Below, piece by piece: positions 30,401 through 53,000 of a stretch of DNA of 64,000 nt. A program made the translations under genes and the position numbers. The notes beneath the pieces were generated by a model. That model searched no databases. It saw only the letters and a list, made by a program, of their open reading frames with translations, and was not told where the DNA came from. Origin of the DNA: Dendrobates tinctorius (Eukaryota); the NCBI RefSeq assembly GCF_039654945.1, contig NW_027361738.1, forward strand, positions 81,840,001 through 81,904,000, in the 5' to 3' direction. Within the stretch, counting starts at the first letter, position 1. Each line of letters begins with the position of its first letter.

Positions 30401-31707
30401 ACAGATCCTGAGTTACCTCCTGTATTATACCCCAGAGCTGCACTCACTATTCTGCTGGTGCAGTCACTGTGTACATACATTACATTACTGATGCTGAGTT
30501 ACACCCTGTATTATACTCCAGATCTCCACTCACTATTCTGCTGGTGCAGTCACTGTGTACATACATTACATTACTGAACCTGAGTTACATCCTGTATTAT
30601 ACTCCAGAGCTGCACTCACTATTCTGCTGGTGCAGTCACTGTGTACATACATTACATTACTGATCCTGAGTTACCTCCTGTATTATACCCCAGAGCTGCA
30701 CTCACTATTCTGCTGGTGCAGTCACTGTGTACATACATTACATTACTGATGCTGAGTTACACCCTGTATTATACTCCAGATCTGCACTCACTATTCTGCT
30801 GGTGCAGTCACTGTGTACATACATTACTGATCCTGAGTTACCTCCTGTATTATACCCCAGAGCTGCACTCACTATTCTGCTGGTGCAGTCACTGTGTACA
30901 TTACATTACTGATCCTGAGTTACATCCTGTATTATACCCCAGAGCTGCACTCACTATTCTGCTGGTGCAGTCACTGTGTACATACATTACATTACTGATG
31001 CTGAGTTACACCCTGTATTATACTCCAGATCTGCACTCACTATTCTGCTGGTGCAGTCACTGTGTACATACATTACTGATCCTGAGTTACCTCCTGTATT
31101 ATACCCCAGAGCTGCACTCACTATTCTGCTGGTGCAGTCACTGTGTACATTACATTACTGATCCTGAGTTACATCCTGTATTATACTCCAGAGCTGCACT
31201 CACTATTCTGCTGGTGCAGTCACTGTGTACATACATTACATTACTGATCCTGAGTTACATCCTGTATTGTACTCCAGAGCTGCACTCACTATTCTGCTGG
31301 TGCAGTCACTGTGTACATTACATTACTGATCCTGAGTTACATCCTGTATTGTACTCCAGAGCTGCACTCACTATTCTGCTGGTGCAGTCACTGTGTATAT
31401 AATTACATTACTGATCCTGAGTTACATCCTGTATTATACTCCAGAGCTGCACTCACTATTATTACTGTCTCTGTATCACCATTTCCATGTATTGTAGGAC
31501 TACAAGTACCAGGTCCTCGCTGTCCTCTGTGCAGGTGTTTCTAATCCCTCAGTAAACTGCAGTGTCACATTTAGCGTTGTAATAAATGACTCCACGCACT
31601 TTGACTGCTCTCGGATTCCGTCCATCTCGGTACTTTGCCCGGGAGGCGCAGATCTTTCGCTGCTCGTGGTGCGGATGGACTTCTATCTGCAAACGGGGAT
31701 CCGTCAT
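15391..31707 (-). CDS. RBM48: RNA-binding protein 48, ~336 aa. Coding exons 31600-31707, 24874-25064, 22478-22623, 20152-20627, 15391-15480
   Basis: HHEQRKICASRAKYRDGRNPRAVK|VYTINLESRYLLVQGVPAIGVMKELIEQFALFG...LQSAR|VAKRKLDENSFFGGILHVCYAPEFESV...RFMPRTTQLQERQRRRE...KQRRRI* matches RBM48. GT-AG introns in phase. Head-to-head with PEX1 as in other vertebrates. Confidence 0.93.
16651..19739. mobile_element. Non-autonomous piggyBac-type (Tx1D-like architecture) DNA element, 3.1 kb, with internal ~390-bp tandem repeats and TTAGGG-rich repeats
   Basis: TTAA|CCCCTTCACGACC ... GGTCATGAAGGGG|TTAA. The marker GGTCTAGTTTCCAAAATGG recurs at about 17660, 18045, 18442 and 18825. No transposase ORF. Confidence 0.8.
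20152..20627 (-). CDS. RBM48: RBM48 coding exon 4 (5' boundary approximate)
   Basis: RFMPRTTQLQERQRRRE...IVMGPKLP...DDSLNASAKLITDKLKE; donor gtgtgt; acceptor chosen by reading phase. Confidence 0.82.
20720..22450. repeat. 35-36-bp AT-rich minisatellite (TATGTACAAGAATATAACTACTATAATACTGCCCC) filling RBM48 intron 3, with an inverted internal block at about 21278-21745
   Basis: Tandem repeat; orientation flips at about 21277 and back at about 21746. Confidence 0.95.
22478..22623 (-). CDS. RBM48: RBM48 coding exon 3
   Basis: VAKRKLDENSFFGGILHVCYAPEFESVQETREKLQDRRRYV; tttag acceptor, gtcagt donor. Confidence 0.93.
23657..23964. mobile_element. hAT-type MITE related to 1693-1964
   Basis: TAGAGATGGGAGAACGTGCT ... 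AGCACGTTCGTTCATCACTG degenerate TIRs. Confidence 0.55.
24020..24450 (-). mobile_element. Degenerate Penelope-like retroelement RT fragment
   Basis: Minus-strand ADVSLLWKG...LNTNNIGLKF...IFCKPTATNSFL resembles PLE RT motifs (DDxxxIWxG, LNxxxxxLKFT, YRKPT). Confidence 0.5.
24874..25064 (-). CDS. RBM48: RBM48 coding exon 2 (RRM)
   Basis: ORF 24870-25064; ctag acceptor, gtgaga donor. Confidence 0.94.
25160..31460 (+). repeat. 81/86-bp satellite array (about 74 units) filling RBM48 intron 1, with a 1442-bp higher-order duplication
   Basis: Tandem repeat. The variant unit CATACCGTACATTAC...CTCAGCTA occurs at about 27260 and 28702. Confidence 0.97.
31600..31707 (-). CDS. RBM48: RBM48 coding exon 1
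   Basis: MTDPRLQIEVHPHHEQRKICASRAKYRDGRNPRAVK, donor gtgcgt. Confidence 0.88.
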
Positions 31708-32262
31708 TTTCTTCTTCACTCCTAACACTCCAGGCCTCTTTCACTCCCATCACTGACCTCCTACACATAATATACCATCACTGCGCTGTCTGCCTGTGCA
31801 GGAACCATTTTCCTGAAGCCTCTGGCTTGATTATTAAAGCTCTTGGTCTTCGGAATGATGGCCGCCCTTACATAGCCTTAAATCGTACAGGTGGCGACAC
31901 TTGTATTTACTACGCCTGACGCGCTCTGCAAATCACGTGTCCACACAGAACCCGGAAACGCCAACTACAAATCTGATTGGTCGGAAGGAACCATCATGCA
32001 GAATAATGAAGGGGGGGGGATGTACAATTTTTTTTCTGAATTTCAACAATAATATTATACACACCTATATTATACCCTTTGTGTGTTTTTTTGTAGAAGT
32101 AGAATAATCTTGAATTTATCCCAGACGAAGTTTATTATTATACTCGCGTTTCACTGATAAATGTGAACAGTCCCCCCCTGTAAGTGGTAGAATGCTGAGC
32201 TCCAGCAGCGGTGTGTCCCCAGCACTGGAGAGTGATGTTGTGAGCCGGAGCCGCCGTGGGGA
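31708..32262. promoter_or_regulatory. Bidirectional RBM48/PEX1 promoter region
   Basis: Divergent ATGs about 555 bp apart. E-box CACGTG at 31934, ETS-like CCGGAA at 31952, ACTACAA at 31964, CCAAT (ATTGG) at 31976. Confidence 0.7.
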
Positions 32263-32376
32263 ATGCTGGGAGGGGGGATATCGGGGGCTGCGGCTGTCAC
32301 CGTGACCCTCACCGGCGCCAAGGATGCGTTCCTGCGCCTGACACCCGAGCTCAGCGCACAGCTGCGCCTGGAACAG
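32263..32376 (+). CDS. PEX1: PEX1 exon 1
   Basis: [38 protein letters not shown], gtgaga donor. Confidence 0.88.
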
Positions 32377-35300
32377 GTGAGAGCGTCCCCTGCCGACCCC
32401 CTGCAGGCTGTGCACTCAGTGACTGGGGGCCCCTCCTCTCCAGCTTATATACAGGGGGCCACAATGTCTCCTCACTGTGCAGGCAGGAGCGTCTGGTCGT
32501 CCCTGTTGTAGAACTACATCTCCCAGCGTGCTGCTGCTAGGGCATGCTGGGAGTTGTGGTTCTGCAGCAGCTGGAGTCATATCTACGTGAGATCTGGATT
32601 TGTAGAAGGCAGGGAGCATGGAGCCCTTTGGCACGGCTCAGAGATTGCTCTGCACGCTCCCTTTGACCTCCATCATCTTTTTGTGTGTGTGTTCCCCTTT
32701 AAATATTTTATTCTGTGAGACAAAACCGTCTTTTTTTTTTTTCCTGCAGAATCTAATCGCTTTTCGTAACGTCCCCGCGAGTACGTGAGATCCGCGGCGT
32801 CACCGTCCTCCTGTCATAAAACCTTTGCTCCAAGAGAAGCCGAGAAAAGAGCCACGTTAATGAGTAATGGTGGCGCGAGGCGTCCAGGCTGGGGGAGGGG
32901 AGGCTGCTGCAGCGGCGGCTCGTGCGGAGCTTACGTGATTTAGCTCCTGAAAACCGAGGTGCGGTGAATGGGCGCCAGCTTTGTCTGTGTGGTCATATTA
33001 GTGCACTCGTTTTTTAATTGAAGGACTGGTTCTGTACCGAAAGATCCCGTTAAAGGGATTTTCTCATTTCTGCAAGTGATTATATATTACTCGGATACGA
33101 TCGACCTTCGGGATCTTTAGGCCGCGTGCACACATTGCGGTTTTTTTTTTTTTTCAGTGCAGATTTGTCACAAAACTTGAAGGGAGCGAGAATCCTGCCG
33201 TCTCCTGCACACGTGGCTGATTTGTGACTGGTAGATTATATCTGCAGCGTGTCAGTTCTCAGGCTATGTTCACACGTGGTGGGGTTTTTTTTTTTGCTGC
33301 GTTCTTTATGCAAATTGAAAGCTGCGTTTTACAGAACCGGCCGAAGCGACGAGAGATCACAAATCTCATGCGCGCACTTTTTTTTTTTTTTCCTGACCGA
33401 ATTGGAAAACTGCTGAGTTTTTATAAATTGCAGCACTTTTTTTTTTTTTTTCAGCGTTTTCTTTCATCCATAGAAAGCAATGAGTGCAAAAAAAAAAACG
33501 CAGCAACAAATTAAGAACGCCGGTATCAGGTTCTGCTTTTTTTGGTGCAGAAAACTCAAGCTCAACAAGCACTAAAGTGTATCAGCGTGCACAAGAGACA
33601 AATGTGCCAGAAAACCGCAGCCAAACCTGCATTGTGTAAGCAGATTCTTTACTGCCGAGACAGCAGGATTCCCTGCAAAGAAAAATGCAATGTGTGAACA
33701 GAACCTTACAGGGGTTCTGCTGCAGATTTCCCCCAGACCAATAAGTGGGGGAAATATGTAAGAAAAACGCAAGTAAAAAAAGAAGCAAATTAAACTTTTG
33801 CTTTTATCTGCCAAGAGATGCACCAAATACACAATGCGAGCACATGTGAAGAGGTTTATTTATAGACAGTAACAAAAACTCATGAGAGAAACAATTACTC
33901 AATTATTTCCACTTGCAAGTCTGAAAAACGTGTGAACATACCCTAAACAACTATGCACGTGCAGGGACCACCGTGGTGAGTCCACAAGGGCAGCCCCATA
34001 GACGTTCCTGATGTGCCGTTCAATTCATCGTGTCTCCAGGGCCAGTCAATGAGTTTCTGGTTTGGATGAAGAAGGCGCTCATAGGGGAGAGCAGGGAATC
34101 TGTCGGTAGGATCACCCCTCATAAGCAGTCTATGTTGATACGCTATTTGTTTTAACCAAAAAAAAAAAGTCAGTACATGGTGAAGCACAGACCGCTGATT
34201 GCACGCTATCATGTTTCCTCCAGGGCGGCGCTCTAGAGGTGACATGGGAGGAGCAGCGGGTCTATCTCGGTTGGATGGCGAACCGCAGCAGAGTTACAGA
34301 CTACACCATGGTGGAGCTCAACAGACAGCTGGCCGAAAAACTGGGACTTGTGGATGGACAGCAGGTACTGAGCATGATCTCCAGCTCCGGGGACATGTGA
34401 CTTCTCGGCTGTTGAGAAACTACAGCTCTCAGCATGCCCGGACAGTCACACGTATGTATTGTCATAGAGTTTGAGCCATACATATCCAGGATATTTTGTG
34501 CTCAGTCTTTTGAGATTATGTACCTGTAGCCATTCTTTATATTTGGTGGCAGAATTGGCCTATTCCCGAGAGGGAATCCTCCCCAAGGTGCCGGACACTG
34601 AAAAATCATGTTTTATTCGGCATTTTTCCATGTAATTTGTATAAAATAACTAATTTACTACTGAAACAGAAAAATCCAGGTTTGAAACCATATGCAGATT
34701 GGCATGAAAATGCATTCGGGGTGTGTCAGTGCACAGAGTAGTGACACCCTCCCAATGCATTGGCAGACTGATTTGCATGTGGCTTCAAGGCTTGATTTCT
34801 CAGCGCTGACACATTGGATTACTACAAGACACGTGTCACCTATACGGACAAACTGCTAGTTTTATTATAAAAATCTTCCCTGCAAGATTCACTTCTCGCA
34901 CCTGTAACAAGTTTGCCCCCAACTTTTTTTTTTTCCTTATAAGACTATTGATATTTTATTCCAGAAAATAAGTACCGTATATACCAGTGTATAAGCAGAC
35001 CCCCCCCCTAATTTTGCCACAAAAAAATGGGAACTTATTGAAGCCTAGGATCAATGGTGGTCCAAGAAGATGCTCTATAGAAACGCCCCCCCCCCATATG
35101 CTGGCCCAAGAAGATGCTCCATAAATACCCCCCATATATTGCTGCACAAGGGTTAATGCTGCCCCATAAATACCCCTTATTTGCTGCTGCAATTAAAAAA
35201 AAAAAAAATGACACTCACACCTCCATCGCTGGGGGCCAGGTGCCGTTGCCTTGAGCTCCTGGCACCGGTGATATTTTTTTCTCCTACTGGCAGACACGTA

Positions 35301-38300
35301 ATGTACAAGGGCTGGTATTCTTTCATGGAAACATATCTAAATATTCAAAACTTCACATATTGCCTGTTTTACACTCTGACATGTGGTCCCAAGTTTGGTG
35401 CTTTTTCTATAGCTCCACCAGCCCTCTTCTGTTTCGGGGGTCTCTCTGTATCAATCAAGATGCTGGCTTAGCTCCTTTCTACTCTAGTCAGGTCCTAAGC
35501 TACAAGTCTGTGGTCACTGACTGCAGATTACTTCTCACAGCGCGCATACTATGAGGATTCACCTATGTTGGCCATCATGCATACTTTCGGCCACATTCCG
35601 ACTAGACGTACACAGCCTCACTCAATGTATTGGGCAAGGCCAGAAACAGTCTACTCTGATTGTGGCCGGGCGTATATCACATGATCGCCCGCTCCCGACA
35701 TTGGAGAATCCTCACAGCGTGCAGTGCATGTGTGCTACGAGGATTCACACGTCTGCAGTCACAGAGTAACTACAGACTTGTACTTCAAGGCCGGACAACC
35801 CTTTCAAGAAAGCTATCACTGAGTCACTGGTGAAAAGCGATTTAGCCTCCCCTCCAACCTATCATCATTCTGCACTTAAGAATGAAATCCATTTGTATCT
35901 TGTAGAAATGAAATACATTTATTTATGTGAACAATATAGGAGATAAATCCCCAAAACATTGGTAGAGTATTGCAAAGCAAGAAGTCCATCAACACGAATG
36001 ACATTAGCTCTTCAGAATTAAATCTAAGTCAGCAGAATAGTGCACGTAGGACACATGCCGATATATAGAATATATACAGTAATACAGTGCTCAGTGATGG
36101 CAGTGCCAGGAAAGAAGGTATAGATCTCACCCAATTCTTGTAGTGGACCAAGTCACATGCTGATGCAAGAGTATATGACCAGAGGGGTGAACCGGTAGCC
36201 TTATGTGCCCAGTGTAACTCCCGCCCTGACAAGGGCAGTACCTAAGTATAACCTATGAAGACTAGCCCACGAATACGTTTCCACCTCAAAAGCAAATCCT
36301 CATCAGGGGAGTACCAAAAGAGGAAAAAGGATCCATTAGATTCACAGCTAAAGGGTATAAGTCAGGGCGCTGCAGTGACAGCAAGCTCTAAAAGAAGCAT
36401 GCAGGGCGCCACACGGCCTCTTGGAAGTATATGCTCCTGCTGAGGCTGAAACGTGTCGGGTGGACTACTCTTTTGGGGCATGTTACATGTTCAAACTTGA
36501 GTCCTGTCCTTGTCTGGGCAGGAGATATACAGGGGATATTAGGTTACCAATTCACCCTTCTGGCCATATACTCTTGCATCGGCATGTAACTCGGGTCCTC
36601 TACAAGAATTGGGCGAGAGCTATACCTTCTTTCCTGGCAGCACTGTACTATTGTAGTGTGGCACAGAGCTCTTTTACTCATTAAAAGTTACAGTAAGTTC
36701 TAACCATTTATCCTACTTCTGCTGATGTAATCATATCAGATTTCAGTGTTAAAGTAAAACATATAAAGCGCACAAACAATGTAGAACAAAGGTAACAAGG
36801 GAAAAAAAAAAAAACCAGGGGAGAAGGGAATCAGTGGCTGATGACACAAGGATTCAATTGTGAACAAGAATCAAAACAGATAATGGAGAAATTCTACCTA
36901 TAAAACATCTGGATATCAGACCATGGCCGCATGGTGGGACCGGCTGAGCAATGGACTCCGATGTCGCTGGCAGTCCTATGGAGAGGTACACATGCCCGAG
37001 CCTTATCTGGGTTGTTGGGGGGGGGGGGGGATCCCCGCAGTTGTACTCTTTAAGACAATACTTGGACATTAGGTGCCATTACCAGCAGTACAAATAACAT
37101 ACAACTGTACGGTGATAGCTGATTACTCTCTCAAGCAGGCGACCCAAAAAGAAGGCATGAAAATGACTATTTGGCACATACGGGACTATTGTACCCAGGC
37201 CAGGGAGTCAGCTCTGCTGCAGAAGGTTCAACTCAATGGACCCAAAACACAACCTCATACCTCTGTCAGCAGGAGGACACACCACCAATAAGAATAATAC
37301 AGATATGGTGTAAAAGTTATAGGGGTATTCCTATCTACAAGATCCTATCCCAGTATGTAGTAGGTGTAATAGTAATTTTAGCAAATACCTCCAATAAGAA
37401 ACGTAGTACAGTTTTTCTGATTCACTGCATCTTTCTTCATGTGCAGGCATTACAGGATCTTGGGTATCCATGGTTATGACCACTATCAGTGGTCGTAACC
37501 ATGGATACCCAAGGTCCTGTAATGCCCCTTGCATGAGGAAAGAGTGAATCAGAAAAACTATAAGTTTCTTATTGGAGGTATTTGCGAATATTATTACTAC
37601 ACCTACTACATACTAGGATAGGATCTTGTAGATGGGAATACCCCTTTAAACTACTGATCTAGACCTGTGAAGAGTAGTTATAACCGGCCATTTATTAATC
37701 TCTTCATTCTGGACAAAGATTGGGCTCCGTGAATGATCTGTCCATCTACAAGTAGGACCGCCCACCGGACTCCTAAACCAAATTGAGTAGAGAAAAAAAA
37801 CAAAACTGCAAGTTACAAGAAATTACTTGTCACTGCTATCAATGTTTAATGGGTTGTTCCCATTTTTAGAAGTTAGCACCAAACTTGCTGATGGGCCTGG
37901 TGTCCTAATGCTGGGACACCTACCTATTTGAATGTAGCGGTGGCCGGACATGTGCCGCCCTGCTATGTTCAGTCTCTGTGGAGCTCCCAGAGTACAGTGC
38001 TCAGCCTCCGGTGACAGTCCCATAGAGAATGACACAGTGGTGCACACATCCGGCCACCACGACATTCAGAAACCATTCTGTGGAGTCCAGTTTTTGGGAT
38101 TAGTGCGGGTCCCAGCAGTCAGACCACCAGACAGGTGATAATCTCTAAAGATTGGAATACCCCTTACTAACACAGGATATAATCAGCAATCCGATAGACC
38201 CTGATCAGTGGTGGCTTATACCCCTGCAAAACAGCACTATTCTAGTGACTTGGCTTCATACACGTCAGTCTTACTAATCCAGATTTAATCGCATATATCC

Positions 38301-41300
38301 AGATGGGCAGAGCTGCATGTGGTCAACATTGCTTCTCCACGTATGCCAGCAGGTCATGTCCAGTTACCATGGGATGTTATGTCCTCTGCAGCTTTTGATC
38401 TCAGAGTCAGACGTAAGAGACAGGAGAGCTTAGGTGAAGCACCAACAATTATGGCAGAGTCCAGAAAAGATAAGAGCTGTAATATCGTAATCTTAGCTGC
38501 CAACCAGTTATCGCCCCCTCTCATAACCCGGGAAGAGGTGGCCGAGGACGCTCTGCAGGGGTTTGTTCACCCGCATGTCATAGTTCTTGCCCAGGTCATG
38601 TCGGCAGGCCGGACAGCTGTACACTGAGGCCTTGAAGGAGCGGTCCAGGCAGCTCTTGCAGATGTTGTGCAGACACTCGGTGGTGATGGGCTTGTACACC
38701 ACCTCCTGGCAGCAGATGCACAGGAAGGTCTCCTCCACCTTGCTGATGAATTTGGGCCCTTCCTTTAGATGAGTCATCACTTCGCTCCATAACTTAACGT
38801 TCAGCTCGTCCTTTTCGATCAGCTCTTTTTGCTCCGGAGTCAAGTCGTACACAAGCTCAGTTTTAGTTTTCTTCTGCGTTCCCTCCTCGTCGTCATCATC
38901 ATCATCATCATCAATGACAGATTTCCTTTTTCTCTTCCCTTTGACCGGACTTTCTAGTTCATCTGAATCTAGGTTCTCCTTCTCCCTCTCCTTGTTGGCC
39001 ACAGACTCTAGATAACCCTCGGGGTACTGCATAGTGAGGCCAAGTTTTTTACCACGTTCTTTGCCCTCTTTGGTCCATGGCGCCGGCTCGTCGTCATCTC
39101 TCCTCAGAAGGTAGCGCCATATGAGGAAGCCGGACTTGCCCTTCTCAGGCCAGTATTTCACTACTTTGTAGATGCCGTCGTATCGGTTGCCCTCTTCTGG
39201 GGCGAATTTGCTGTGCTTGCTCCCTTTGGCATTACGCACAACACGTACGGGTTTGCCCGCTTTCCAGTCTTTAGCTTCGGCCCCTTCTTTATTATTGATG
39301 GGGGTGTTACAGTTCATGGCTAGTGCTCGATTCATGTTGGTCAGTTTCTGGTCACATGACTGCTCCGCCGTCCGCTTGTTACCGGAGAGATCACGACCTC
39401 CGCTCCCGGTGTAGGTAAACTCTGTGCCATCATCAGCATCATCTTCATAACCACCAGCCAGGACCAGAGAAAAGGAGCCGTCATTGCTTCTCCCATGGAT
39501 GCCCGCCACATGAGGCCGATGCACGCCAGCCTCACTAACCTGCACCCTGAACTTCCACATGGTGCCAACTGGTACACCGGGTATCTTGCCGTAGTGATTG
39601 GATGGGACAATGGTGCACTCTCTGGAGCGCCCGACGCACGCCATGCCTTTCCCCCAGTCTCTTTGAGAAGATGAGCTGGCGGACGCCATCTTGGCTTTCT
39701 TCTTGCTCTCCTTTAGCTTTTCCCCCGCCAGCACCACCTCGCTGGTATCGTTCCTGCAGTCCGGGCAGTACCAGTCATCCACATCTGGCAGGGCGGACAG
39801 CGGCGGGTCCAGGCAGTAGATATGGAAGGCCATGTCACACTCATCGCACAGCAGCTGCTTCTCGGGGTCCTGTTTGCCCCCACAGATGTGGCAGGCGCAC
39901 ATGCGGCACTTGGTTTTGGGGTCATCCTTGCACAGCTTGCATTGGGGTCCAGTCTGCGGTTTGGCCGGCACTTCCTCGGGAGTCGGGGGCAGGGTCTCTG
40001 CTGGGATTGGGGTCTCGGGCCTCTCGATCTTAAACACCTCATCCACAAATACGATTTTGCAGTCATTTATGGGGTCTCCAGCGTCCCCCATTAGCAGCTT
40101 GGCGTACAGTTCCTTGCTGTTCTTGCCCTCTTTCTTGCGGAGGATCTCGGCGTCGTACCAGTAGCCCCGCTCCATGGGCTCCTCCGGGTTGTAGTTGAGC
40201 ATGACCACCAGTCCGGCCCGCAGCTCCTCCCAGGACAGCGTGCTCCGGGCCCGGGGGCGCACGTCTTGGCCCCTCAGCTGCACCACCCCATTCTCAGGAT
40301 AGCCCTCGTACTGGATATGGTAGATGACGTCATCAGCGGGGTCTCCGGGGCTTCCCCGGGTCACGTTCACCACCTCCGCCTCGAACCAGGCGCCCATGTG
40401 CAGGTCCCGGGCGTCCACCGGCTGCTTTATCCGGTACAGGCCGCGGGCGCTGGGCTCCTCCTCCGGCTCAGTCTCAGACATCGGGGAGTCGTCATCGGGC
40501 TCTTCCGCCGTTGCCGGCACCGGGGGAGGAGGAGGCGGCGGCGGGAGCTGGCGGAGCAGCAGCTGCACGATGTCATTCAGGCCGACGCTGTAATCAAAGA
40601 GCGTGTGTCCGTCCTCCATCTGCTTCCCCCGGTAGAAGAGCCGCTGCCGGTCCTGCTCCGCTCCGAACACCTCCTGGATCCGCTCCCGCAGCTCCTCCAC
40701 CTTGGTCAGTTTAGACAGGGAGTCAATGCGGTGAGTCTCCCGGCCGTCCATGGTGCGCACCTGGATCCACATGATGGCGGCTACTTGTCACTCACTACGG
40801 AACTGAGACTTCCGAACTCCCGCTCTCCGCCGGCGGCGCGGTTTATAATCTGGCGGGATCCTGACACGCCCGCTGATGATTGGTTAGCGCTGATTGGTAG
40901 GGAGGAGTTTCCTAAACGTAGCTCCTCCCCCCTATTCGCCGACACTGCTTTCCCGCCCGTTGTTCCTGTTGTCATGGAAACGTCGTTACCCCATACATTA
41001 GTGATATTGTCCTCCCCTCACTATAATATATACACGTCCTCCCCTCACTATAATATATACACGTCCTCCCCTCACTATAATATATACACGTCCTCCCCTC
41101 ACTATAATATATACACGTCCTCCCCTCACTATAATATATATATATATATACGTCCTCCCCTCACTATAATATATATATATACGTCCTCCCCTCACTATAA
41201 TATATATATATATACGTCCTCCCCTCACTATAATATATATATATATACGTCCTCCCCTCACTATAATATATATATATATACGTCCTCCCCTCACTATAAT

Positions 41301-42044
41301 ATATACACGTCCTCCCCTCACTATAATATATACACGTCCTCCCCTCACTATAATATATACACGTCCTCCCCTCACTATAATATATACACGTCCTCCCCTC
41401 ACTATAATATATATACGTCCTCCCCTCACTATAATATATATACGTCCTCCCCTCACTATAATATATATATATATATATACGTCCTCCCCTCACTATAATA
41501 TATATATATACGTCCTCCCCTCACTATAATATATATATATACGTCCTCCTCACTATAATATATATACGTCCTCCTCCTCACTATAATATATATACGTCCT
41601 CCCCTCACTATAATATATATACGTCCTCCTCACTATAATATATATATATATATATACGTCCTCCCCTCACTATAATATATATACGTCCTCCCCTCACTAT
41701 AATATATACACGTCCTCCCCTCACTATAATATATATACGTCCTCCCCTCACTATAATATATATACGTCCTCCCCTCACTATAATATATATATATATATAC
41801 GTCCTCCCCTCACTATAATATATATATATACGTCCTCCCCTCACTATAATATATATATATACGTCCTCCCCTCACTATAATATATATATATATATATACG
41901 TCCTCCCCTCACTATAATATATATACGTCCTCCTCCTCACTATAATATATATATACGTCCTCCTCCTCACTATAATATATATACGTCCTCCTCACTATAA
42001 TATATATACGTCCTCCCCTCACTATAATATATATACGTCCTCCT

Positions 42045-42087
<43 letters not shown>

Positions 42088-45000
42088 GTCCTCCCCTCAC
42101 TATAATATATATATATATACGTCCTCCCCTCACTATAATATATATACGTCCTCCCCTCACCATAATATATATACATCCTCCCCTCACTATAATATATATA
42201 CGTCCTCCCCTCACTATAATATACACTCACTGGCCACTTTATTAGGTACACCTGTCCAACTGTGTGTTAAGACTTAATTTCTAATCAGCCAATCACATGG
42301 CGGCAACTCAGTGCATTTAGGCATGTAGACATGGTCAAGACAATCTCCTGCAGTTCAAACTGAGCATCAGTATGGGGAAGAAAGGTGATTTGAGTGCCTT
42401 TGAACGTGGCATGATTGTTGGTGCCAGAAGGGCTGGTCTGAGAATTTCAGAAACTGCTGATCTACTGGGATTTTCACGCACAACCATCTCTAGGGTTTAC
42501 AGAGAATGGTCCGAAAAAGAAAAAAAATCCAGTGAGCGGCAGTTCTGTGGCCGGAAATGCCATGTTGATGCCAGAGGTCAGAGGAGAATGGGCAAACTGG
42601 TTCGAGCTGATAGAAAGGCAACAGTGACTCAAATTGCCACCCGTTACAACCAAGGTAGGCAGAAGAGCATCTCTGAACGCACAGTGCGTCGAACTTTGAG
42701 GCAGATGGGCTACAGCAGCAGAAGACCACACTGGGTACCACTCCTCTCAGCTAAGAACAGGAAACTGAGGCTACAATTTGCACAAGCTCATCGAAATTGG
42801 ACAGTAGAAGATTGGAAAAACGTTGCCTGGTCTGATGAGTCTCGATTTCTGCTGCGACATTCGGATGGTAGGGTCAGAATTTGGCGTAAACAACATGAAA
42901 GCATGGATCCATCCTGCCTTGTATCAACAGTTCAGGCTGGTGGTGGTGGTGTCATGGTGTGGGGAATTTTTTCTTGGCACTCTTTGGGCCCCTTGGTACC
43001 AATTGAGCATCGTTGCAACGCCACAGCCTACCTGAGTATTGTTGCTGACCATGTCCATCCCTTTATGACCACAATGTACCCAACATCTGATGGCTACTTT
43101 CAGCAGGATAATGCGCCATGTCATAAAGCTCGAATCATCTCAGATTGGTTTCTTGACCATGACAATGAGTTCACTGTACTCAAATGGCCTCCTCAGTCAC
43201 CAGATCTCAATCCAATAGAGCATCTTTGGGATGTGGTGGAACGGGAGATTCGCATCAGGGATGTGCAGCCGACAAATCTGCGCCAACTGTGTGATGCCAT
43301 CATGTCAATATGGTCCAAAATCTCTGAGGAATGCTTCCAGCACCTTGTTGAATCTCTGCCACGAAGAATTGAGGCAGTTCTGAAGGCAAAAGGGGGTCCA
43401 ACCCGTTACTAGCATGGTGTACCTAATAAAGTGGCCAGTGAGTGTATATACGTCCTCCCCTCACCATAATATATATACGTCCTCCCCTCACTATAATATA
43501 TATATATACGTCCTCCCCTCACTATAATATATATACGTCCTCCCCTCACCATAATATATATACGTCCTCCCCTCACCATAATATATATACGTCCTCCCCT
43601 CACCATAATATATATACGTCCTCCCCTCACTATAATATATATATATATGTCCTCCCCTCACTATAATATATATACGTCCTCCCCTCACCATAATATATAT
43701 ACGTCCTCCCCTCACCATAATATATATACGTCCTCCCCTCACCATAATATATATACGTCCTCCCCTCACTATAATATATATATATATGTCCTCCCCTCAC
43801 TATAATATATATACGTCCTCCCCTCACTATAATATATATACGTCCTCCCCTCACTATAATATATATACGTCCTCCCCTCACCATAATATATATATGTCCT
43901 CCCCTCACTATAATATATATACGTCCTCCCCTCACCATAATATATATACGTCCTCCCCTCACCATAATATATATACGTCCTCCCCTCACCATAATATATA
44001 TACGTCCTTCCCTCACTATAATATATATACGTCCTCCCCTCACTATAATATATATATACGTCCTCCCCTCACCATAATATATATACGTCCTCCCCTCACC
44101 ATAATATATATACGTCCTCCCCTCACCATAATATATATACGTCCTCCCCTCACTATAATATATATACGTCCTCCCCTCACTATAATATATATACGTCCTC
44201 CCCTCACTATAATATATATACGTCCTCCCCTCACTATAATATATATATACGTCCTCCCCTCACCATAATATATATACGTCCTCCCCTCACTATAATATAT
44301 ATACGTCCTCCCCTCACCATAATATATATACGTCCTCCCCTCACCATAATATATATACGTCCTTCCCTCACTATAATATATATACGTCCTCCCCTCACTA
44401 TAATATATATACGTCCTCCCCTCACCATAATATATATGTCCTCCCCTCACTATAATATATATACGTCCTCCCCTCACTATAATATATATATACGTCCTCC
44501 CCTCACTATAATATATATATACGTCCTCCCCTCACCATAATATATATACGTCCTCCCCTCACTATAATATATATATACGTCCTCCCCTCACTATAATATA
44601 TATATACGTCCTCCCCTCACCATAATATATATACGTCCTCCCCTCACTATAATATATATACGTCCTCCCCTCACCATAATATATATACGTCCTTCCCTCA
44701 CTATAATATATACGTCCTCCCCTCACTATAATATATATACGTCCTCCCCTCACCATAATATATACGTCCTCCCCTCACCATAATATATATATACGTCCTC
44801 CCCTCACTATAATATATATATGTCCTCCCCTCACTATAATATATGTACGTCCTCCCCTCACTATAATATATATACGTCCTCCCCTCACTATAATATATAT
44901 ATATACGTCCTCCCCTCACCATAATATATATATACGTCCTCCCCTCACCATAATATATATACGTCCTCCCCTCACCATAATATATATACGTCCTCCCCTC

Positions 45001-48000: not shown

Positions 48001-49976
48001 TGTATATATACGTCCTCCCCTCACTATAATATATATACGTCCTCCCCTCACTATAATATATGTACGTCCTCCCCTCACTATAATATATGTACGTCCTCCC
48101 CTCACTATAGTGTATATATACGTCCTCCCCTCACGCTACACGTCTTCCTACATCACCACTGGTCTTAGTAAAGCAATGCCGAGGTTATACGGTGTCATTA
48201 TCATATAATGTGACGCCATTGCTACATCCCATAATATTGTGACACAAAATGCGTCATCTGTGCGGAAAAAATAGTGTAATTTCTACAATATCTGTCATTG
48301 TCCAGCACCAGTCACACGGAGGGGTTGTTATTTTTGTTTTTTTAAGTCATTTTGATCCAAAATTATCAAAAAAAAAAAAAAGCGCCATAAATGCATTCTT
48401 ATCTAATCCTGCTAAAAATCCAATGAAATGTCAGGGGGTTTTAAGCATTTTTTCTATGAAGAGGCTTTGGAAAAACTGGTGTTCAGTCCAGTCAAAAGGC
48501 TGCTAAAAATAAATAAAACTTCCCCAAAAATGAAATTTCCTGAGGTGGTTTCTACTTGGAAAAACGTGTCGTTTTTGAACACCTCAAAAACTTGTGTGTG
48601 AACAGGGCCTGATAGGGATTTAGGCCGGTTTCACACATCTGACTTTCACGGTGTGCGTGCACAGCGCTGCGAGGATCGGCCCTGGCTCTCCGGATAGACA
48701 TATATGGCCTGCGGTCAGTCTGGGCTTTGTGGCCCGTATATGGTCTGTGAAATACGCCAGTCTGAACCCAGGCCTAAAAAAAGCAGTCACACATACACTG
48801 GCTAAAGCTGGTGTGCATGTGTGTGTGTATGTGTGTATATATATATAATTTGTATAAAAAATGTAAATAAAATCTAATAAATAATCCAAGCAAATGAATT
48901 TCAATGTGCGGAACTATCGAAAGCCGTAAAAAATAATAATAATATTTATGCCACGCGGTGAAAGCTGAAGTGAAAAATAGAAATGGCAGAATTTCTGGTT
49001 TTCAGTCACCTTGCCTTAAAAAAAAAAAAAAAAAGAAATAGAAGGAATCAGAAAATCATCTGAACCCCAAAATTTGAATGAATTAAGAAGTACAGCTGTA
49101 GTGCAAGAAAAAAAAACCCCAAAAAACAAACTCTGATACGACTCTGTCGACCAAGAAATAAAAAAAAGTAATGTCTCTCGTAGCCCTCTGGAGCTCTATT
49201 GCCCAAGGACCTCATAATCCTGCAGCCGCCACAAGGGAGGAGACCAGATCTGCTGTTAGGGGAAGACTCATGGTTCGGAAGACTAGTGTCTTAGGCCGGG
49301 TTCACAAGTGATGGCCGAGGTGCAGACAGGATGCCTTGTTGGTGCAACACTCTTGGACCCCGTGGGGACCGTAATTCCTATTAATTGCAATAGAGACAGA
49401 CCATAAATTATAGGAGTCTTAGCTGCCGATCCCTCTCCAATCTGCGATGAATGTAATATCTTCTCTGTTAATTTTTCTTTTCAGGTGTTCCTTAAGCCGT
49501 GTAGGTCTGTCCCATCTTGTAAGGAAGTCACAGTGGAGCCTCTGTCTGCTGATGACTGGGAGATACTGGTAATTAGCTTCTTTCATTTTTACATCACCTA
49601 CCACAAGGGGGAGCTCACCGAATACATATTTATAAAGGTTCCGTGGTTGCGTCTGACTTGTACAGCCAGCACCTGGCAGCTTCAAGTCCCATAAGGAAAA
49701 TATATATATGTCCAAAAAGATGAAAGCAGCACACCAAGATGGAATCGATTCAAATGCAATCTAATTGACCATTCGGCGACGTTCCGGTCCCAAAGGAATG
49801 TGGACCTTTTTCCACATTCCTTTGGGACCGGAACGTCGCCGGATGGGCAGTTAAATTGCATTTGAATCGATTCCAACTTGGTGTGCTGCTTTCATCTTTT
49901 TGGACATATTTATTGAGGTTTGATACATACCTAGAATGTGTTTTGCACCCATTGATTATCCTTTGTGCTGCTTTTT

Positions 49977-50019
<43 letters not shown>

Positions 50020-53000
50020 CAAATTAACCCTTTCCACTTTCTTATTAATATAAAAAATTAGAATTTATTAAAATATAAAATTATTTCACTTTTACTCGTA
50101 CACTTTTACCCTCCTTTAAAAAGCAATCAAAACATCCAGTGTATCCCAAAAACTTTCAATAAAGATATCCACTCTGCACACAAAGAAACAATCTCTTCCC
50201 CAGCGCCATTTACATACAATTGAAAAGTCCCAGAAAATGGCAGCACAAACCAAACTTTTAATTTACGGTGTTTATTTTAGAAATGTATGATTTTTTTTTT
50301 TTTCTCTAATAAAATATTACAATAATATGTAAGTTTGGTTTCCCCGTAGGTAGAAGAGTCATGGTGTTGCATCTTTTTTTTTACTGCCTCATGAATGCCA
50401 TAAAATAAAAAGAGCAAAAAAAAAAAAATACAATGGTGGAATTGCATTTTTTTTTTTCACCATTTTACTGCATTTGGATTTTTTCCCCTCAGTTTTTCAG
50501 TACATTATATAGCTATATATGGTATTTATTCAAATTTCAGCTCGTCCTGCTAAAAAATAAATAAATCCGCATACACCTATGATTAAAAAAAAAAAAAAAA
50601 AACGACTTATGGCTCTTGGAAGAAGGGGAGGAAAAAGTGAACGCTCAAAAATGAAAATTGGCCGGTGTGGTAGGGGTTAATATAACATACAAGAAAATTA
50701 TCTCTTTGACTCTATAGCCAAGGAGTGCGGTCACGGGAGTTCCTGCCGTGGCTAAATTTGTCTCGGTAACATTGGAGATCCATAGCTTCCCGTGAGCCTC
50801 ATGACCACAATGACAAAGTCAATGTTCAGAGTCTGATTTATGACATATCATACAGTGGTATTAACCTCTGTGTGTTCTCAGGAGCTGCATGCGTCTGCCC
50901 TTGAAATGCACCTTCTGGACCAGATCCGGATAGTTTACCCCAAGGCCGTGTTTCCAGTGTGGGTGGATCTGCACACGTGTATATACATTCAGATAGGTGA
51001 GTAGTAATGTGTAGCCTATAGACCAACATATTCCCTTCTATACGCAGCAATAAATATCTGGAAGCCCTGGAATAGAACGATCTCCTGCTTCATATCTTTG
51101 ACCTCTTGCTTACATAAGTTCCGTCTCTATGGGTCCATTCTGACCTAGATGTATACATGATGTATATTGGCTTGCGTCACCTATGGCCTCCAATCCTGCA
51201 TGCATCCCCTCTTATAACTTCTACATTGATTTTCCCTTAGGGAAAATAAAGGATACTGTTCTACACTAGTCAGACGTATTGTATATGGTTGTGGCGTATG
51301 AATCGTTTATAATATTCTATGAGCAGGTTCGGCCGATATGTCTGGGGTCGATTCCATTGCATTAATTATTTATGGTTCCGTCAAAAAACTAAACAGTTTG
51401 ACTATGGTTTTCTTATAAGGAAATCGCTATCAGAAAAATTACCTATCTTTTAAATCTGATTTTTATCTTACTTTTTTTTCTTTTAAATTGAAGTTCAGAA
51501 ATCTTGTAATTTTGACACTGTTCACTAGCTCTAGTACTAGACATATATTTCATGTTATGTACAGATTTATTTTCACCAGTTTAATTGTTAAAATGAATGA
51601 TAACACCTTCATATACAGGAGGTAAAACAGGATCCACCTTTCACAATAGGTGATGTTACAGCTCACCTCCTCCTCCTGTGCAATGACTGATAACATCTCT
51701 ATATACAGTAGATAACACAGGACCCACCATTCACAATATGTGATGTCACAGCTCACCTCCTCCTCTTGTACAATGACTGCTAACACCATTATATACAGCA
51801 GATAACACAGGATCCATCATCCACAATAGGTGATGTCACCTCTCACCTCCTCTACAGTGACCTCTATAAACAGGAGATAACACATGTGATGTCACCGCTG
51901 TGTGTTTGTAATAAGTATTTATATGATTGACAGGGTGATGGTAATCTCTGTACAGCGCTGCAGAATATGTTGGTGCTATATAAACAAGGTGGGAGTAAAA
52001 ACATTTTACACTCATGAAAAACTTTTTTCTCTCCAGGAGCTTTGACTCCGGCTGCAAGCTATGGTCGACTAGAACCTCTGACAGAGTTAATCGTGACTCC
52101 GAAAAACAGAACTGCTGAGAATGTTTTGTCACATATGCCCCCTGCAGAATATGATCTTGGATCCCATAGAACAACTCGTGGAACCACAAGTAGCAGCGAT
52201 ACGTCTTCACTCAAAGACAGGAGTGAAACCTCTGAAATGCCCCCTCCGGAGGACTCCAGTATATGGGACTCTTTAGGAAATCTCTTTTCTTGGGCTTTGG
52301 GAAAAAATCCCTCTAAGACTCATCGCGTCCTCGACAAGGACGTCTTTGGGAGGACTGTGCTGAAAAGCGTTAGCCTAGGAGCGGTTTTCCGAGTCTCCCG
52401 CCATGTTCATCCCATCATAAGAAATAGCCGAGCGTTCCTAGACCATACAGATGAGAACACAGTTCAGGTTTTTCTATGGTATCCAGAGCCTCCAGGTTTA
52501 CTTCCAGACGTGGTTGTATCCTATGGGACAATTGTCGAAATCCCTTCTCCTAAGAGACGAAAAAAAAGGAGTAGCAAGTCGAGTGTGGAGCGATCTGACG
52601 GGAAGAATGAGGAGGCCGTGAAGATACCTGAAGCCGTGGTGAAGATTGTGTGGCACGGGTTTGAGGATATCAAAGACGTCATTGACTATGACACCAGAAA
52701 TGGAAATACACACATTGCAAAAGTTTGGGTCAGTGACTACAACGACCGTCCAATAATTGTTGTTAAATAAGTCGCTGTATAGTTTAGCGTTGTTACAGGG
52801 TTCCTTATCCCCTTCCTGATCCAAGACCTATTATGATGTCTTGAAGGGGATTCAGGAGTTGAGCCCGCACTACACAGGGCTGATTCAGGCTGTGCTTTAC
52901 AGCCGTCACCTGACTCTAACAGCAGGGATCAGAGATAGCTCTGATCTCTGCCGTTTAACCTCCTGTAGTCGTGGAGTGCCCATGGGTTTCAGTGGCAGCC

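Follow-up and report, generated by a model that had tools for sequence, protein, structure and literature searches.

The intronless UHRF1 gene in PEX1 and the stretch upstream of it

We analyzed a 64,000-nucleotide (nt) stretch of the Dendrobates tinctorius genome, referred to here as the window (NCBI RefSeq assembly GCF_039654945.1, contig NW_027361738.1, positions 81,840,001 to 81,904,000, forward strand). The window contains an intronless UHRF1-like open reading frame (ORF), designated copy A, and our subject is the stretch at 40773-41008 directly upstream of its ATG. Judged from its sequence, this stretch is very probably the proximal CpG-island promoter of copy A, and it contains a short core that is shared with the multi-exon uhrf1 genes of other frogs. 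Because the ORF lies on the minus strand, upstream denotes higher plus-strand coordinates, and positions within the promoter are counted from the ATG at 40772. The coordinates of all features are given in Table 1.

The copy A protein has the complete UHRF1 architecture, with UBL, TTD, PHD, SRA, and RING domains. A protein search recovered this same protein at 100% identity, on a contig that also carries a second UHRF1-like protein annotated in D. tinctorius, and the closest other proteins were the orthologs of Ranitomeya (96%) and Phyllobates (94%). The gene is nested antisense in PEX1 and adjoins RBM48, both in the window and in five further species (Ranitomeya, Phyllobates, Bufo, Pseudophryne, and Pyxicephalus), whose PEX1-nested orthologs are likewise all single-exon and antisense. 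Full-length ORFs of 736 to 765 amino acids (aa), with all domains kept, occur across Hyloidea, Myobatrachidae, and Ranoidea. The blocks of the window that are colinear with the Bufo locus span 31585-34391 and 49457-52778. As three PEX1 blocks precede the retrogene, the host intron may be PEX1 intron 3 and not intron 2, provided that all three blocks are exons. A second intronless paralog, copy B, was found in D. tinctorius and in Pyxicephalus, and copies A and B have the same 13 nt directly before the ATG.

An earlier reading made from the sequence of the window alone (the sequence-only reading) had described a TATAAA, two E2F-like sites, two CCAAT boxes 14 bp apart, and an X-box sequence upstream of this ATG. 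Each of these sequences is present, and all lie on the minus strand, 45 to 209 bp upstream of the ATG. The CpG-rich setting that it had noted was also recovered: the GC content of 40773-41008 is 0.55 and the CpG observed/expected ratio (o/e) is 1.13, values above those used to define a CpG island (GC > 0.5, o/e > 0.6, at least 200 bp at a gene 5' end). The island extends over approximately 40250-41000 between flanks with o/e of 0.2 to 0.4, and the promoter stretch forms its upstream end. Taken singly, the short motifs are not above chance; their conservation across species is, for part of the cluster only. In the copy A genes of dendrobatids the proximal E2F-like site lacks T/A flanks (GATCCCGCCAGA, versus TTTCCCGCCAAA in paralog B and Bombina), so that in this lineage it consists of the GGCGGGA core only.

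The minisatellite that bounds the promoter upstream occupies 41009-42223 and resumes from 43445 on, and the CpG o/e of the array is 2 to 3.5. Ranitomeya has a counterpart array (L002:8258-9767) with a related 20-bp unit, which ends at -233, versus -237 in the window. No minisatellite array was detected at the Phyllobates or Bufo locus.

Table 1. Positions of the features discussed (window coordinates unless another locus is given; distances from the ATG in parentheses)
Feature	Position	Strand	Remarks
Intronless UHRF1-like ORF (copy A)	38508..40772	-	2265 nt, 754 aa; single long ORF
Probable 3' untranslated region (UTR)	37648..38507	-	~860 nt; RNA-like contigs end at 37615-37648
Putative short 5' UTR	40773..40823	-	Transcription start site (TSS) placed from the TATA position
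GCGGGAG	40817..40823 (-51..-45)	-	24 nt downstream of TATA-like box, at predicted TSS
23-nt core TCCCGCCAGATTATAAACCGCGC	40836..40858	-	E2F core abutting TATA-like box, then CCGCGC
TATAAA	40842-40847 (-75..-70)	-	
Proximal E2F-like site TCCCGCC	40852-40858 (-86..-80)	-	GGCGGGA on + strand
Proximal CCAAT box (AACCAATCA)	40879..40883 (-111)	-	26 nt upstream of core
Distal CCAAT box	40893..40897 (-125)	-	
Degenerate GC box GGGAGGAG	40922..40929 (-157)	-	
Distal E2F site GGGCGGGAAA	40949..40957 (~-185)	-	Includes GCGGGAAA at 40949-40956 (-184..-177)
X-box-like quasi-palindrome GTTGTCATGGAAAC	40968..40981 (-209..-196)	.	Gene sense: GTTTCCATGACAAC
27-bp minisatellite	41009..42223	.	Upstream boundary of promoter; 236 bp upstream of ATG
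RBM48 exon 1	~31.6 kb of window		Colinear with Bufo locus
PEX1 blocks before retrogene	32299-32393, 32817-32897, 34213-34391		Colinear with Bufo locus
PEX1 blocks beyond retrogene	49.5-52.8 kb of window		Colinear with Bufo locus
Copy B, D. tinctorius	L001:10001-12232		Same scaffold as window; single-exon, 743 aa, 86% identical to A
Copy B, Pyxicephalus	L008:10001-12220		Single-exon; 3 kb past PEX1 3' end, ~37 kb from copy A

A 23-nt core in ten frog loci

We compared ten frog loci: the six PEX1-nested orthologs, two copies of the intronless paralog B, and two parental uhrf1 genes, the latter being the 16-exon genes of Pelobates and Bombina. A 23-nt core, TCCCGCCA(N3)TAYAAACCGCGC, that is, TCCCGCCA-N3-TAYAAA(C/A)CGCGC, is present upstream of the ATG in all ten. 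It occurs once in each locus of 22 to 46 kb, always in the sense orientation, and contains both the proximal E2F-like site and the TATAAA of the sequence-only reading. The core lies at -85 from the ATG in the window, at -100 in copy B of D. tinctorius, at -86 and -92 in the other dendrobatids, at -140 in Bufo, at -193 in Pseudophryne, and at -119 and -131 in copies A and B of Pyxicephalus; in the parental genes it lies at -207 (Pelobates) and -383 (Bombina). The window core and the Pelobates core are identical at 21 of 23 positions, and by a rough binomial estimate made by hand, a match this good would arise by chance within 400 nt with a probability of about 1e-8.

A CCAAT box is located upstream of the core, at -26 or -36, in eight of the ten loci. 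The five hyloid copies all have it at -26 from the core; in copy A of Pseudophryne and both parental genes its position is -36. The spacing of -36 is thus the parental one, kept in the myobatrachid copy, and the spacing of -26 in hyloid A and B corresponds to a deletion of 10 nt, or one helical turn.

BLAST alignments between retrogenes and parents, obtained with small words, extend over 29 to 63 nt around the core. Between the promoters of Pelobates and Bombina uhrf1, true orthologs, BLAST aligned only the same 24-nt core. By these extents, the retrogene promoters are as similar to the parental promoters as the parental promoters are to each other. By this comparison, the promoter core is inherited from multi-exon parental uhrf1 and is not newly evolved, because a unique 23-mer recurs at ten loci with order and orientation unchanged, for which convergence is no explanation. 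The sequence-only reading had proposed an alignment of these approximately 200 bp to the parental promoter; when this was carried out, the 23-nt core and the CCAAT box proved homologous. Its suggestion that the parental core promoter had been co-retroposed therefore holds for the CCAAT/E2F/TATA-like core, but not for the distal E2F site, the distal CCAAT box, or the X-box, which are not ancestral.

The elements ancestral to all copies and parents are the E2F core, TAYAAA, CCGCGC, and one CCAAT box. GGCGGGA is present in all ten loci, and the full TTTSSCGC in copy B and Bombina; copy B shares the promoter core, and its E2F site is the better one. Other motifs are restricted to part of the tree. 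GCGGGAG, which occupies the position where a TATA-directed start would fall, is found in all eight neobatrachian copies and in neither parental gene. Several A copies carry a GC box, located about 74 nt upstream of the core; it reads as an intact GGGGCGG in Ranitomeya, Phyllobates, Bufo, and Pseudophryne and is degenerate in the window. The distal E2F site, GGGCGGGAA, occurs only in the four hyloid A copies (4/4), being absent, among the ten loci, from copy B, ranoid A, Pseudophryne A, and both parents. The distal CCAAT box is confined to D. tinctorius, with CTGAT/GTGAT at this position in Ranitomeya and Phyllobates. Conservation in orthologous copies, on which the sequence-only reading had made its interpretation depend, is thus seen for the core and one CCAAT box; the second CCAAT box is species-specific, and the X-box is found only in dendrobatids and, in part, in Bufo.

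Agreement among dendrobatids carries no weight here, since promoter identity (83 to 84%) is not above the identity at 4-fold degenerate sites (85 to 89%). Between the window and Bufo, the promoter aligns at 69% identity over 75% of its length, and 4-fold sites are 65% identical. The 3' UTR and the downstream flank gave no alignment at all between the window and Bufo, and constraint on the promoter is indicated by the fact that it aligns where these two fail.

The exact core is established for frogs alone, because no match was found in the lizard Podarcis: neither the core (with up to 5 substitutions) nor its substrings were found within 10 kb upstream of the UHRF1 ATG. The exon with the ATG follows an intron in Podarcis UHRF1, and only L010:7440-7760, which is CpG-rich and contains two CCAAT boxes, comes into question as a candidate. 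In Bombina the 383 nt between core and ATG hold an AT-rich, intron-like stretch; Pelobates is ambiguous with respect to an intron in the 5' UTR.

Inheritance of the core and alternative explanations

Taken together, these data make it likely that 40773-41008 serves an ancient and intact retrogene as its proximal CpG-island promoter, with a core carried over from parental uhrf1. The order CCAAT, 20 nt, TCCCGCC, TATAAA, CCGCGC would be that of the parental core promoter. Its vehicle would have been a spliced uhrf1 transcript that started at least 60 to 100 nt upstream of the usual start, before the CCAAT box, and so retained the core. A model of this kind, in which a transcript started upstream carries the downstream core promoter with it, was reportedly put forward by Okamura and Nakai in 2008. 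The core would have moved into PEX1 with the processed copy on the neobatrachian stem and would have been copied again when a local duplication of the retrogene gave rise to A and B. Later additions would be the second E2F site and the X-box-like block in hyloid A and the second CCAAT box in D. tinctorius.

Mammalian UHRF1 is an E2F target. From the identity of the motifs and this known E2F control, we infer that NF-Y binding to the CCAAT box and E2F binding to the adjoining site would result in transcription linked to proliferation and S phase, starting approximately 45 nt upstream of the ATG. E2F1 and E2F8 have both been named as UHRF1 regulators (PMC9036120). The cell-cycle interpretation that the sequence-only reading had given to E2F plus NF-Y is compatible with the sequence, and if neobatrachians have no other UHRF1 gene, which the protein tree suggests, an S-phase-linked output would be the expression that the gene needs.

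Evidence of the expression type came from four small runs of two studies, with 48 to 79 Mb of contigs. These runs are termed RNA-like, which is their inferred kind, and contigs cannot show a start. In all four, contigs cover 37615/37648-40785, and no contig of these runs falls within 40786-41008; the gene-body depth is 200 to 490 in two of them. The pattern fits an mRNA whose 5' UTR is short and whose promoter is not transcribed. None of 18 words sampled from a 223-bp promoter stretch was present in X1, X2, and X33 (study P1) or in X29 to X31 (study P8); X18 and X19 are not listed in this search. All 18 words occur in four runs of the possible assembly source sample, which may be DNA. A loose end in all four RNA-like runs is an exact match to copy B at its stop codon and 3' UTR, and copies A and B are therefore present in the same samples. 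RNA-like contigs with high summed depth are also found at 37000-37353, followed by a drop at 37402-37535 and accompanied by many loose ends; the signal at 37000-37400 is probably an expressed repeat and not a UHRF1 transcript.

Several observations weigh against the inherited promoter as outlined above. Of the two Pyxicephalus copies, A has its CCAAT box in inverted orientation and B has none. The TATA-like box reads TACAAA in three of the ten loci and may for this reason not act as a TATA box, and the T/A flanks of the proximal E2F site are gone in dendrobatid A copies. The RNA-like contigs end at 40785, exactly the point where A and B become identical, so this end may be a break in the assembly graph and not a 5' end. 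Three further small runs, X22, X27, and X28 (study P9; 90 to 113 Mb of contigs), contain 61 to 100% of the promoter words. These three could represent DNA of a reduced-representation library, an open-chromatin assay, or RNA that starts upstream. Finally, if the parental TSS lies at or upstream of the E2F element, the unusual upstream transcript is not needed.

This last point leads to the alternative that survives best, although we consider it unlikely: transcription of the parental gene begins at the E2F element or just before it, so that the core is 5' UTR of any full-length mRNA, and the core re-created a promoter after insertion since E2F/NF-Y promoters work within or near the transcribed region. 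The DHFR promoter has a TTTCGCGCCAAACT element at its start site, and the TTTCCCGCCAAACT of the frog core presumably resembles this initiation-site element. The TACAAA of three loci speaks against a strict TATA role and thus for such a vehicle, and core-to-ATG distances of 85 to 383 nt are compatible with 5' UTR. Against it, the parents and most retrocopies share a CCAAT box whose distance upstream of the core is conserved, and no RNA-like contig covers 40786-40885 despite the gene-body depth in two runs.

A second alternative concerns an addition to the core and is compatible with inheritance of the core itself. It holds that the X-box-like site is a working RFX site, by which germline or ciliated-cell expression was added to the cell-cycle core. 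Like the X-box promoters of ciliary and spermatogenic genes, the site is a 14-nt quasi-palindrome with an AT center that fits the loose pattern GTHNYYATRRNAAC; it differs from them in having one mismatch per half-site to GTNRCC(N)RGYAAC and in being lineage-restricted. Thus, the "consensus RFX X-box" of the sequence-only reading is not a consensus site: it carries two mismatches to the strict pattern GTNRCCNNRGYAAC and fits only the loose one, and because two mismatches are needed, it is missing from a list of sites with at most one. The loose pattern is rare, with two sites in the 64 kb and three matches on both strands against 0.53 expected (five of 100 shuffles equal this), and the rarity favors a working site. 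So does the surrounding block, ACGT(T/A)TCCATG(A/C)CAACAG, which is common to dendrobatids and Bufo; 12 of 14 positions are identical in Bufo, against only 65% at 4-fold sites. On the other side, the Bufo version, by reading of the alignment, also has two mismatches. The site is unchanged in Phyllobates and differs at one position in Ranitomeya; neutral identity among dendrobatids is 85 to 89%, and dendrobatid identity equals neutral identity. In the ten-locus comparison it is absent from the parents, paralog B, and the ranoid and myobatrachid orthologs, including Pseudophryne A. Given a nonconsensus, lineage-restricted site conserved among dendrobatids no more than neutral sequence, the hint of germline or ciliated-cell expression that had been drawn from it is weak, and a working RFX site is quite unlikely. 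The window does contain one perfect match to the strict RFX pattern, GTAGCCATGGTAAC at 419-432, its sole one, far from the UHRF1 gene.

A third possibility, which we judge very unlikely, is an origin at the DNA level, in which a uhrf1 segment was duplicated with its promoter into the PEX1 region and its introns were later lost by recombination with cDNA, so that the promoter was never on RNA. The promoter would then have been kept without an unusual transcript, and a later local DNA duplication is real, given that A and B share 111 to 150 nt upstream. This origin requires the precise loss of approximately 15 introns, and hence many more events. Moreover, A/B homology stops at the stop codon, the parental flank is unrecognizable beyond approximately 100 nt upstream, and the core-to-ATG distance is short in all retrocopies, compared with 383 nt in Bombina with its intron-like stretch. 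Finally, a promoter that evolved anew or pre-existed in the PEX1 intron, its likeness to uhrf1 being convergence on cell-cycle motifs, can be practically discounted: retrocopies do usually gain new CpG-island promoters (PMC4772013), and the distal E2F site, distal CCAAT box, and X-box-like block are lineage-specific, but a unique 23-nt string with 21/23 parental identity, in the same orientation and the same CCAAT/ATG order at 10/10 loci, is not accounted for.

History of the retrogene and its place among known systems

The parental uhrf1 gene has approximately 16 coding exons over 23 kb in Pelobates and 14 kb in Bombina, and no PEX1 was called within 10 kb of it in either species. UHRF1 genes were single-exon at all eight neobatrachian loci checked. 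A maximum-likelihood tree was built from 40 proteins. The 27 neobatrachian UHRF1 sequences in it all fell into one clade (100/100), which under outgroup rooting branches next to Pelobatoidea, the place expected of Neobatrachia. No neobatrachian protein in this tree grouped with the multi-exon genes, introns having been checked at the eight loci. The tree position, together with the intronless neobatrachian loci, indicates that the retrocopy arose on the neobatrachian stem. A parental-type protein was not seen in the protein lists of neobatrachian species, and on the basis of these lists the parent gene has apparently been lost in Neobatrachia. This suggests that the neobatrachian UHRF1 genes are orphan retrogenes that replaced their parent.

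Homology between copies A and B, as aligned by BLAST, has its upstream limit 111 to 150 nt before the ATG and does not continue past the stop codon. In the protein tree, the hyloid copies A and B cluster with each other and not with the ranoid copies A and B, although A is positionally orthologous, inside PEX1, in both groups. This grouping suggests that the linked copies underwent gene conversion, or that the duplication happened independently in hyloids and in ranoids.

A new retrocopy normally lacks a promoter; parental promoters are regarded as rarely inherited, and such inheritance is hard to recognize in old copies. Among expressed human and mouse retrocopies, approximately 3% have inherited a parental promoter (Carelli et al. 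2016, PMC4772013), and the mammalian examples have a synonymous divergence (dS) of 0.08 to 0.39 (PMC4772013). Copy A resembles these cases in being an intronless copy at a new locus with upstream sequence that aligns to the 5' region of the parent, and the same vehicle is proposed, an upstream-started transcript containing the core. By these features (intronless, relocated, aligned at the 5' end), copy A is a retrocopy with an inherited parental promoter. The frog case differs in being much older, common to Hyloidea, Myobatrachidae, and Ranoidea, and in that the inherited part is recognizable only as the 23-nt core and CCAAT box.

Copy A is probably also to be counted among the orphan retrogenes (Ciomborowska et al. 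2013, PMC3548309; PMC4772013), as suggested by the single clade of 27/27 proteins and the 8/8 intronless loci. It shares with them a CpG-island promoter, as found in 9 of 10 mammalian orphans, and differs from them in that the core is inherited and not newly recruited and that there are two linked copies. Its sequence also fits the definition of an E2F/NF-Y CpG-island promoter. As in the S-phase promoters of this class, a CCAAT box with NF-Y-type flanks lies 20 to 30 nt upstream of GGCGGGA(A), near the start and within a CpG island; in the frog genes the E2F site abuts a TATA-like box and CCGCGC, giving one invariant 23-mer. The literature searched contained no description of a UHRF1 retrogene from a frog. 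The case is an unusually old new example of a known mechanism, on an essential epigenetic gene, and not a new kind of system.

Beyond copy A, a broader scenario can be drawn, which we put forward tentatively as plausible but somewhat short of probable. All neobatrachian UHRF1 genes would be orphan retrogenes descended from one processed copy that landed in PEX1 with the E2F/NF-Y core, which enabled loss of the parent; this copy would then have been duplicated, and the nested hyloid copy would have gained a second E2F site and an X-box-like module, possibly as incipient subfunctionalization.

UHRF1 is essential to maintaining DNA methylation, and its parental gene has seemingly been lost in these frogs. 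The locus can be regarded as a natural experiment in which the surviving minimal cis-element, legible from the ten-locus comparison, is the 23-nt E2F/TATA-like string plus a CCAAT box. This makes the element a candidate minimal uhrf1 promoter for frogs and offers a way of finding out what amount of regulatory DNA is enough for a retrocopy to take its parent's place. If the scenario of a single-origin orphan is true, the UHRF1 of most living frog species would be encoded by retrogenes only.

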